A stretch of DNA of 63,409 nucleotides, counting the filler, from Olpidium bornovanus S191 (taxonomy: Eukaryota > Fungi > Olpidiomycota): assembly GCA_017911155.1 (NCBI GenBank). It is 26 parts of 26 records of this genome, joined end to end, with 100 filler letters (N's around TTAATTAATTAA, not from the genome) between each part and the next. Parts side by side here need not be neighbours in the genome. Positions count along the whole stretch, not along the records: positions 48,520 to 51,308 come from JAEFCI010006564.1; 25 more parts are not named here. One strand, written 5' to 3'. Below, piece after piece: positions 48,351 through 51,308 of the stretch. The notes beneath the pieces were generated by a model that was not told where the DNA came from, made no database searches, and saw nothing but the letters and a program-made list of their open reading frames with translations. Numbering within the stretch: the first letter of the stretch is position 1; each line of letters opens with the position of its first letter. Made by a program: the position numbers and the translations under genes.

Positions 48351-48587
48351 GGTTAGTGGCCGCTCGTGAGTACCGGACATCCGGGGTGACGCACGCGACC
48401 AATAGCTTTTGTTCTCACGNNNNNNNNNNNNNNNNNNNNNNNNNNNNNNNNNNNNNNNNNNNNTTAATTAATTAANNNNNNNNNNNNNNNNNNNNNNNNN
48501 NNNNNNNNNNNNNNNNNNNGGCGGCGCTTTGCCCCGCGACCCCACACCCCCGCCCCCCAGGAGGCGGCAGGGGCCCCCCGGGGGATT

Positions 48588-48622
<35 letters not shown>

Positions 48623-50493
48623 CAGGCGGTCGAGCACGCCTCGATGCTCGAAGGACTTGCATCAGCATGAAAGCCTGTTCCCATCGCCGCACATGTCGCC
48701 GGCAACAAGGCTGCCGGCGGAACTCTGAGAGCGGTGCCGTTACACAATTTCCCATGCTCGGAAGCATGGGAAGCGTCGGCCAGTCCGCTCTGCAGGAGCT
48801 TGAACGCATGCGGCGTGAGACGCCTGGCCGCATGCTTCTCCATCAGAGAATTGACACGAGAGGCAGGGGTTCTTAATCTTCGAAGCCATCGATCCCGCCA
48901 AACTTGCCGTGCAGCCCGCCGTGTTCGTGGCACTTTGAGGGAAAATCGGCGGGCAGTAGGGACAGGTGGCGCCGGGCCTTGCAAAGAATTTTTTTTTTTG
49001 CTCCAGCACAGCGACTTTCAACTCTCAAACCCCGATTGCCAAATTCCACTTGTTCGCGTCTCCTCGCCCGCTCGCTCTAACGTCCCGATCTTTTCTCCGA
49101 ACCGTCTCCCAACGCTTCCCTCCCGTCTTTCTCCTCCGCTTAGTCTTTTTTTTTGTTTTCTCTACGGGGTTCTCTAAGTCGAGTGGTGTACTCTCAGGGC
49201 GCCGCCTTGGGGAAAGCTTTAACGAGGCGGCGGGTCGATTTCTTTTGGGGGCGGAAGAGGGTCCACAACGCGTTCGGGTGGCAACGCGTAATGTGGAAGG
49301 GGGGGGGGAAAGGGGGGGGGGGAGGGGGAGAGGAGAGGGGGGTGGAGAGAGTTAGAAAAGAAAATTCCCAACCGAGCTTCTACGTTTCCGTCGCGGTTGG
49401 GATTTCACGCTCGACTTTTGGAATCTAACGGTGATTTTTTTTTTTTTTTTTTTTTTGGCTTTCCGCCCGTCCCTTTCTGCCACTTCTCCCCGAAGTTTTC
49501 TTCTACAGCGGCCGTCGCGTCCGCACACCCAGCCAGTTTTCCATCCAGCCAGGGTCATATCTTCAGAGCTCAAAGCAAACCCAAAGCCTTCTCCTGACTC
49601 CAAGGAACAGCGTGCGCGCCCTTTCCGTCGTCGCCGCTGCGTCTGGGATGGCTGGTTAGTCGAGTGGTTGGGGGTGTGTGTGGTGTGTGTGCATCGGTTT
49701 GAGCCCAGTAGGATATGGTGGTGACGTTTCCCATATGCGAAGCATTCCTAATCCTCAAAAAAAAAGGTTCCTACTCCTCAAAAAAAAGGCATGGCCACCA
49801 GTGTTCTTGTCGCCCACGTGACTTAACTTCCTACCTTAGCTCATCCCGCTTTTCGTGGGCGTCAATCGGCCGGATGGTCCGAAGCCACGAATACAAATCC
49901 CGCCTTTGGGCACCGGGCCTCTGCGGGTTGAGCTACGGTCGGAATAAGTCGGGCAAGTCGCACAAATGCCCACAGACGCCAAACTGGGGCTGCCACTACC
50001 AACGCAACTCCGCCTTGTTCCGGCGTTTCGCCTTGAAAGCCGACGAAGCTCATGGACAAGATGAGCCGCCACGCGGACGTCCGACCTCCCACCCTCCCTC
50101 CTTGGACAACCTTCAACGTCGCGTTTACCCAGTGTGGCCACCACAAAAAAAAAAGGCCGCCGGTCAAACATGACCGCGTACCAGACATGGCAAGACCTTG
50201 TGCGCCAAAAAAAAAGCCAATAAAGGAAAAGAGAAGCCTTAAAGGAGAAACAAAAACTCTCGTTGTGAGGAACCTGCAGATGAAAGAACGCCATATACCG
50301 TCAAGTCGCACGTGAACTGTATGACAAAAAGCCGCCGAAAAGGAGGGCTCCAGGACGGGACATTGGACGTGTAAGGTTGGGTGCGAACTTGGAAAAAAAA
50401 AACAAAAAGATGTTCATACGTAACCAAGGAACGTGACGCGGAGTCTGCGGGCGATCAAAGGAACGAAAATAAAAAGCAGGGAAATGACGTCGA

Positions 50494-51308
50494 TCATTCC
50501 AGGTGGTGAAAATGCGGCGGCAGTTGAGCCATGCGTGGGTTGACGGGCCTGGGTGGCTGCTTCTCCCGTTGGATGTCGTCCGGAAATTCGTCAGGCCCAA
50601 CGGAGGTCACCTCGGCACTTGGTGCGAAACTTCCGCCGACGGCTATCGCTGACAAAACGACCTGGTTGTGATGGGGAGGGAGGAAGGGGGGAGGGCGGGG
50701 GAGAGGGGGTCAACGGAAGCGATCGGCAAGGCGCACAAGCCGCCCTCCCTCCACGACACGATTGAAAAGATGCAGCGGGTCCTGACCTTGTTCAGAAGAT
50801 CCGCGACGCAGTAAAGAACTTCTGTCTCTTCGAAGGAGATTTTGTTGAACATGGCCGCGGCCCACACCACCCAAGTGAGCGGCCAAACGATGGTGATGTG
50901 AGCTCTCAGAAGTCTGAGCGTTGTCATCTGCTGCCTTGCGCTTCTATCTCCCTTGGAACGCAGCCGGTCCACGGCCCTGTCGATTGCAGAGGTCAGCCAC
51001 CGCCACAGCTCGGCAGTGACAAATGTCAAACATCCCAAGGAAAGCAGACACATTGGGACGGAGTAGGAGGCCGGAAGAAACGAGGCCAGAAGTCGAGTGG
51101 TCGTTGCAACCTGACGCCAAAGGTTCAGTACCACCGTTTAGCCCGGTTCGGAATAATTCTTTGAAACTCCCTTGAGACTTACCGCAGACATGCACTTCCC
51201 GGTAACAGATTGCGCCCGGCCAAGATACGTCAACTCATCGCCCTCCGGCCATAATAAGAAAGCGATTCGCAAACTTACCATTGCTCTTCGAAGCTTGCCG
51301 TTTGCGGA
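50494..51308 (-). CDS. Type-1 (microbial) rhodopsin, enzyme-rhodopsin/RhGC-like, TM4-TM7 and C-tail (5' partial)
   Basis: ..LLSLGCLTFVTAELWRWLTSAID..LRLLRAHITIVWPLTWVVWAA..ISFEETEVLYCVADLLNK|VVLSAIAV. DxxxK retinal-binding motif with the Lys codon at 50787-50789, then a phase-0 GT-AG intron at 50786..50662. Confidence 0.78.

Follow-up and report, generated by a model that had tools for sequence, protein, structure and literature searches.

Among the flagellated relatives of the terrestrial fungi, Olpidium is the closest, and a short contig from Olpidium bornovanus S191 raises the question of whether this lineage carries an opsin of the rhodopsin-cyclase family in a form that has no cyclase. 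The window analyzed here is the whole stretch of 63,409 nucleotides along which all positions below are counted; positions 48520-51308 of it are the complete contig JAEFCI010006564.1 (2789 bp) of assembly GCA_017911155.1. The rhodopsin gene lies on the minus strand between 51308 and 50494, with its last four exons on the contig. By hydropathy the contig covers helices D to G of the protein; helices A to C, and any helix 0 or extension, lie beyond the contig edge. An earlier note on this DNA had described a divergent, enzyme-rhodopsin-like opsin apparently lacking its cyclase domain. We read the locus as an expressed cyclase-less opsin of the fungal rhodopsin-cyclase (RGC/CyclOp) lineage, with an overall probability of about 0.6. 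The structural side of this reading is very probably right, and the odds that the protein is still a functional sensor are about even.

Gene structure and transcripts

Assembled RNA contigs from three runs (X1, X3, and X10) were placed on the genomic contig, and the exons and introns described here, all on the minus strand, follow from them and from the translation. The most upstream coding sequence in view, at 51279-51308, is the 3' end of an exon cut by the contig edge. It encodes SANGKLRRAM, a loop and the start of helix D, which aligns with NVKRAM of the nearest relative (P0003, described below), and the donor GTAAGT comes next. RNA contigs of all three runs cover this exon and extend upstream past the contig edge. 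Intron 1 (51195-51278, 84 nt, GT..AG) is skipped by the RNA contigs in the three runs and is followed by a micro-exon of 12 nt, TGCATGTCTGCG, at 51183-51194, which encodes CMSA of helix D. Intron 2 (51111-51182, 72 nt, GT..AG) is placed by the RNA contigs and the splice sites. The micro-exon is seen in X1, X3, and X10 as the plus-strand letters GCAGACATGCA, which fall inside the 51111/51279 joint; in all three runs the joint from 51279 to 51110 carries eleven extra letters, which correspond to the 12-nt micro-exon. CMSA keeps the reading frame, and the alignment to P0003 is gap-free across it, which provides independent support for the splicing.

The main exon (50787-51110, 108 aa) takes the protein from the last part of helix D through helices E and F and into helix G as far as the Schiff-base lysine (CVADLLNK); its translation is VATTTRLLASFLPASYSVPMCLLSLGCLTFVTAELWRWLTSAIDR...LRLLRAHITIVWPLTWVVWAAAMFNKISFEETEVLYCVADLLNK, and RNA depth over it is up to 83. 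Directly after the lysine codon lies intron 3 (50662-50786, 125 nt, GTCAGG..CAG, pyrimidine-rich). In X1, X3, and X10 alike, 50661 is joined directly to 50787 with these 125 nt skipped, and the three introns are confirmed in the three runs. The last coding stretch, at 50494-50661, was assigned from its translation and from RNA that runs through it without a joint. It holds the rest of helix G (VVLSAIAVGGSF), a tail of 43 residues that includes 9 prolines, and the stop codon, TGA at 50496-50494, so that the reading frame ends 55 codons after the Schiff-base lysine. The earlier note had read a proline-rich tail of about 45 residues and a stop at 50494, in good agreement with this, and RNA, which it had named as the means of defining the 3' exons, confirms the intron after the lysine and shows the micro-exon.

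The RNA contigs of all three runs pass the stop codon unspliced into a 3' untranslated region at 50246-50493; the X3 contig reaches 50246, and the main X10 contig (depth 83) ends at 50418. Past 50418 the depth in X10 drops from 83 to about 12, and farther downstream it is about 3.5; the drop after approximately 50418 fits an mRNA end shortly past the stop. Splicing onward to an effector domain, which would have overturned the earlier note, is thus absent at the C terminus of the dominant isoform. Such RNA contigs report the dominant isoform and drop rare splice variants, so a minor isoform that continues past the stop is possible.

Run X10 also has unspliced RNA contigs of low depth (3.5 to 7) at 48628-50227, with several single-nucleotide differences from the reference. 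Read-through, another transcript, and DNA carry-over are the candidate origins of these contigs. Unlike this downstream region, the rhodopsin coding part has no single-nucleotide differences in X10 RNA.

The protein deposited for this contig, BJ554DRAFT_8456 of Olpidium bornovanus (P0001, 188 aa), is contradicted at both ends by the RNA contigs. Its model, at 50643-51281 on the minus strand, begins at an ATG that lies inside intron 1, takes intron 1 as coding, and treats part of intron 3 as coding too, until a false stop codon at 50643 that lies past this intron.

A type-1 rhodopsin and its nearest relative

By its sequence, the Olpidium gene is a type-1 (microbial) rhodopsin. The motifs that the earlier note had quoted from the TM5-TM7 region (WLTSAIDR, LRLLRAHITIVW, and ISFEETEVLYCVADLLNK) were all found on the minus strand, as was helix G, which reads CVADLLNK/VVLSAIAV with intron 3 at the slash, directly after the Schiff-base lysine; the codon of the aspartate is at 50801-50799 and that of the lysine at 50789-50787. 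The rhodopsin fold, for which the earlier note had looked to a profile search, is recovered by Pfam Bac_rhodopsin (PF01036) on the main exon, with E=4.7e-5 and 23.4 bits over profile positions 124-211 of 224, a fragment score that stands 1.2 bits below the whole-protein cut-off of 24.6 bits. An ESM Atlas feature search likewise returned "Bac_rhodopsin", with no finer placement.

Bacteriorhodopsin (BR) numbering was transferred to the Olpidium protein through an alignment of P0003 with BR (P0003 was also aligned to the rhodopsin phosphodiesterase, Rh-PDE). The aspartate at D212 and the lysine at K216 are kept, as are, in helix F, the proline at P186 and the tryptophan at W189. Other positions of the retinal pocket have changed: W182 is threonine (serine in P0003), Y185 is tryptophan and so still aromatic, and G122 is apparently arginine, as it is in P0003, although the register of helix D is uncertain. 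These alterations make chromophore binding uncertain. The primary counterion and W86 belong to helix C, which lies beyond the contig edge.

When 1.84 billion representative proteins were searched exhaustively by phmmer with the 108-residue exon, there were three matches, namely, the gene's own deposited model, P0002, and P0003. P0002 is spurious. It is a tandem-repeat protein of 1396 aa in which a helicase-like unit of about 70 aa ("KNYRSHPTLL") recurs about 20 times nearly unchanged, and its E value of 5e-16 comes from "SFEE"-type words alone, matched in 11 stretches, a case of significance inflated by repeats.

P0003 (394 aa; E=1e-11 in the same search) is the only real relative. It is 37% identical to the exon in a pairwise comparison (E=6e-22) and 35% identical to the spliced, 177-residue C terminus over 130 residues (E=1.6e-26). 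P0003 comes from the Logan transcript contig L002 (SRR31163103) and is a fusion of a rhodopsin to a class III cyclase, with scores of 68.8 bits for Bac_rhodopsin and 142 bits for Guanylate_cyc. The rhodopsin part has its best solved match in the Rh-PDE of Salpingoeca (7cj3, E=3.5e-11), with bacteriorhodopsin at about 1e-7, and the cyclase part matches the cyclase-domain crystal structures of BeGC1 (6ao9) and CaRhGC (6sir and 5oyh) at about 1e-32. P0003 and the Olpidium protein have in common the idiosyncratic motifs LP.SY..P, GC..F, VWRW, and SFEE.EVLYCVAD, and each has a polar residue at BR W182. In P0003, unlike the Olpidium protein, the rhodopsin part is followed by a linker of about 50 aa and then the cyclase. 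Upstream of a frameshift, L002 encodes an N-terminal extension and extra hydrophobic helices in the manner of RGCs. The frameshift itself, of one base at about 890-905 of L002, falls between helix B and helix C and splits the sequence into two overlapping gene calls (306 aa and 394 aa); it is either an assembly error or real.

The cyclase of P0003 departs from that of BeGC1 in two regions (about 255-262 and 345-355), in which the second metal-binding aspartate is asparagine, the transition-state asparagine is threonine, and the specificity cysteine (C566) is glycine; the glutamate of the GTP-specific pair is retained. This cyclase is probably impaired catalytically as a homodimer, and the substitutions hint that the cyclase may be degenerating in the branch formed by P0003 and the Olpidium gene. 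Comparable degeneration of a cyclase has been described for CcNeoR4 (Broser 2023, PMC10622942).

Because P0003 is a rhodopsin-cyclase fusion, an enzyme-rhodopsin affinity is indicated for the Olpidium gene, by way of P0003 alone. The affinity proposed in the earlier note holds to that extent, the only detectable relative being a cyclase fusion; no known RGC is reached directly, and the Olpidium fragment matched no catalogued RGC at E<=0.001 among the 1.84 billion proteins. That the link to the RGCs would pass through a single intermediate sequence counts against our reading. As far as sequences tell, the branch is very sparsely sampled, with this fusion as its sole other known member.

Absence of a cyclase and comparison with known systems

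Several searches bear on whether the contig also encodes a cyclase. The cyclase part of P0003 found nothing better than E=0.35 by tblastn on the 2.8-kb contig, and with the whole of P0003 the same search returned the rhodopsin exon alone (E=8e-19). A hidden Markov model built from four cyclase domains reached at best 0.4 bits on all six-frame segments, compared to 66 bits for the rhodopsin control. The last coding stretch has no Pfam domain, and the tail exon taken by itself shows no similarity to the linker or the cyclase of P0003. Ten open reading frames downstream have no Pfam family, and the downstream DNA has no Rfam match, in keeping with the absence of a cyclase from the next 2 kb or so noted earlier. 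Since the frame ends 55 residues past the lysine and gives way to the 3' untranslated region, the main product has neither linker nor cyclase.

The DNA from 48520 to 50245 contains no recognizable gene, with no cyclase, Pfam, or Rfam match, and is marked by homopolymer and C-rich tracts. On the minus strand these comprise a run of about 31 T, another of about 23 A, and C-rich stretches, at 48590-48625, 49440-49462, and 49293-49340. The contig ends beside one homopolymer or low-complexity tract, which is the probable cause of the break in the assembly.

Known opsins with this architecture are the NeoRh proteins of the Rhizophydiales (GpNeoRh and GhNeoRh), which are NeoR-like, lack linker and cyclase, and have RGC(b) genes as their neighbors on the opposite strand; W86, W182, and Y185 are replaced in them, at least one binds retinal and fluoresces, and their function has been called mysterious (Broser 2023, PMC10622942). 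Compared with NeoRh by description only, the Olpidium protein is likewise a fungal type-1 rhodopsin, probably associated with the RGC family, that ends after helix G, and it too lacks the linker and cyclase. Pocket aromatics are replaced in both, W182 by asparagine in NeoRh and by threonine in Olpidium. The two differ at Y185, which is isoleucine or valine in NeoRh and tryptophan in Olpidium; W86 is glutamine in NeoRh and lies off the contig in Olpidium. They differ also in their surroundings, the adjacent RGC(b) genes of NeoRh having no counterpart in Olpidium, where no cyclase gene lies within 2 kb downstream, and in their hosts, chytrids of the Rhizophydiales in one case and the phylum Olpidiomycota in the other. 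At the ci3 position, NeoR has a glutamate (E262) and the Olpidium protein an aspartate.

The rhodopsin guanylyl cyclases, or RGC/CyclOp proteins (BeGC1, CaRhGC, chytrid RGC, and NeoR), carry a linker and a class III cyclase on the same polypeptide as the rhodopsin, and the dominant transcript of the Olpidium gene encodes neither of these. The likeness to this group lies in the relative P0003, which has the RGC architecture; P0003 shares the TCP motif of helix C with this group and CVAD..K of helix G with the Olpidium protein. In Homolaphlyctis polyrhiza the rhodopsin and GC1 genes have undergone fission, with GC1 547 nt away (Galindo 2022, PMC9616733). Olpidium resembles that case in encoding a rhodopsin, probably of CyclOp type, without a fused cyclase and differs from it in having nothing cyclase-like in the 1.97 kb downstream and none reported in the proteome. 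The Rh-PDE of Salpingoeca rosetta (7cj3 and 7d7q) shares CVAD..AK in helix G and LP in helix D; it differs in its C-terminal phosphodiesterase effector and matches the Olpidium fragment weakly in a direct comparison (E=0.62, profile).

The earlier note had gone further and suggested a new type of fungal photoreceptor, which is too strong given that the cyclase-less NeoRh proteins of the Rhizophydiales and the fission in Homolaphlyctis are already published. Cyclase-less opsins associated with the RGC family are a known kind of protein, to which Olpidium would add a new and highly divergent case from a new phylum.

Function, decay, and other readings

On our reading, the Olpidium rhodopsin would bind retinal and sense light but would itself make no cGMP. 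By descent it would be a cyclase-less derivative of the RGC/CyclOp lineage, with an architecture like that of NeoRh. Its role could be that of a stand-alone or modulatory opsin subunit, or it could be what is left, still transcribed, of a phototaxis system in the course of being dismantled by a soil and root parasite. Function is favored by a reading frame that is intact in all four exons, by the precise splicing of the micro-exon, and by the level of expression; decay is favored by the altered pocket and by the reported absence of GC1 and BeCNG1.

In its full form, decay would mean that an ancestral rhodopsin-cyclase has left behind a gene that is transcribed but has lost its cyclase, is losing its pocket, and senses no light. 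The missing cyclase (from the RNA contigs, tblastn, and the hidden Markov model), the threonine at W182 and tryptophan at Y185, the already degenerate cyclase of P0003, and the lack of any GC1 or BeCNG1 reported in the Olpidium proteome are all consistent with such a leftover, and in Spizellomyces the loss of CyclOp has been tied to a soil lifestyle. Yet the visible frame is uninterrupted through all four exons with a 12-nt exon spliced exactly, the lysine and aspartate are retained, expression reaches a depth of 83 in one run, and GpNeoRh, with a pocket altered even more, still binds retinal. We regard such a leftover as somewhat unlikely.

A second alternative concerns the 5' end of the mRNA. 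Of the 2909 nt in the X10 RNA contig, the first 2299 are upstream of 51308; the RNA contigs of X1 and X3 (1069 nt in X3) likewise extend upstream of the contig edge. By analogy with L002 and P0003, the contig edge should be reached with about 340 aa, or about 1 kb, which leaves roughly 1 kb or more of surplus in the approximately 2.3 kb of upstream mRNA. The surplus could be a longer N-terminal extension, 5' untranslated sequence, an extra domain, or a neighboring transcript merged by the assembler. Because these 2.3 kb in X10 exceed what an RGC-like N terminus needs, and may hold another domain or a merged neighboring transcript, they count against our reading. The rhodopsin would then not stand alone but form part of a larger protein with an additional N-terminal domain, or face a divergently transcribed partner, and NeoR and RGC genes are in fact often arranged head to head (Broser 2023, PMC10622942). 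Against this, the effector is C-terminal in the known enzyme rhodopsins, the RGCs already have a long N-terminal extension and a helix 0, and an RNA contig that spans two genes is not the same as a single transcript. We consider an extra domain or such a partner unlikely. It is distinctly unlikely that Olpidium keeps a functional retinal photoreceptor from the rhodopsin-cyclase family whose output passes through an N-terminal domain, encoded in the approximately 2.3 kb of upstream mRNA, or through a separate partner; if true, this would make the photoreceptor a derivative of enzyme rhodopsins whose output architecture is new.

For the N-terminal half, word-indexed protein searches with P0001, P0003, and residues 1-165 of P0003 returned only the queries themselves and bacterial cyclases. 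Two of the bacterial matches, P0004 and P0005, have operon-like bacterial surroundings and are irrelevant here. Neither exact-match DNA scanning nor a degenerate-pattern scan of JGI metagenomes gave a match, and viral contigs, when scanned, gave none either.

The provenance of the contig also has to be weighed. The S191 assembly was made from zoospores that had been washed off cucumber roots and were not axenic, and two conservative rounds of binning by tetramer composition and similarity reduced 187 Mb of raw assembly to a working assembly of 29 Mb; the assignment of the contig to Olpidium is based on this binning. A contig of just 2.8 kb from such a preparation might come from some other zoosporic eukaryote in the root wash. 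The contig did survive both rounds, however, and near-identical RNA (at least 99% alike) was found in 17 runs from at least six studies, which would fit a common obligate root parasite. Contamination is, on balance, quite improbable.

An ion transporter, either a pump or a pump-like channelrhodopsin, in place of an enzyme-rhodopsin derivative is very improbable, since ChRmine, the best solved match of the fragment alone and one that shares TEV..CV.D...K in helix G, is a non-significant match (E=0.73 for the fragment and 0.0016 with a two-sequence profile, no better than the matches to BR and HR), the only significant relative is a cyclase fusion with a rhodopsin part nearest to Rh-PDE, and helix C, which is decisive for transport, is off the contig.

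A cyclase-less opsin of RGC descent in Olpidium, the reading that we prefer, bears on a published absence. For this same assembly, GCA_017911155.1, the CyclOp fusion, the rhodopsin domain, GC1, and BeCNG1 were all scored "NF", and the system was placed as lost before the split of the Olpidiomycota and the terrestrial fungi (Galindo 2022, PMC9616733). The rhodopsin was probably missed because the deposited 188-residue model starts in one intron and reads into another. An expressed RGC-related rhodopsin in Olpidium, if true, suggests a stepwise loss in which the cyclase and the channel went first and the opsin was kept. Olpidium would then be the second fungal lineage, after the Rhizophydiales, with a cyclase-less opsin of the RGC family, and the main value of the locus would lie in correcting the published absence and in adding a second independent example of such an opsin. 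With a single relative among the 1.84 billion representative proteins, the branch is extremely rare, and its unusual pocket, with threonine at W182 and tryptophan at Y185, may interest those who mine rhodopsins for spectral or fluorescent traits.
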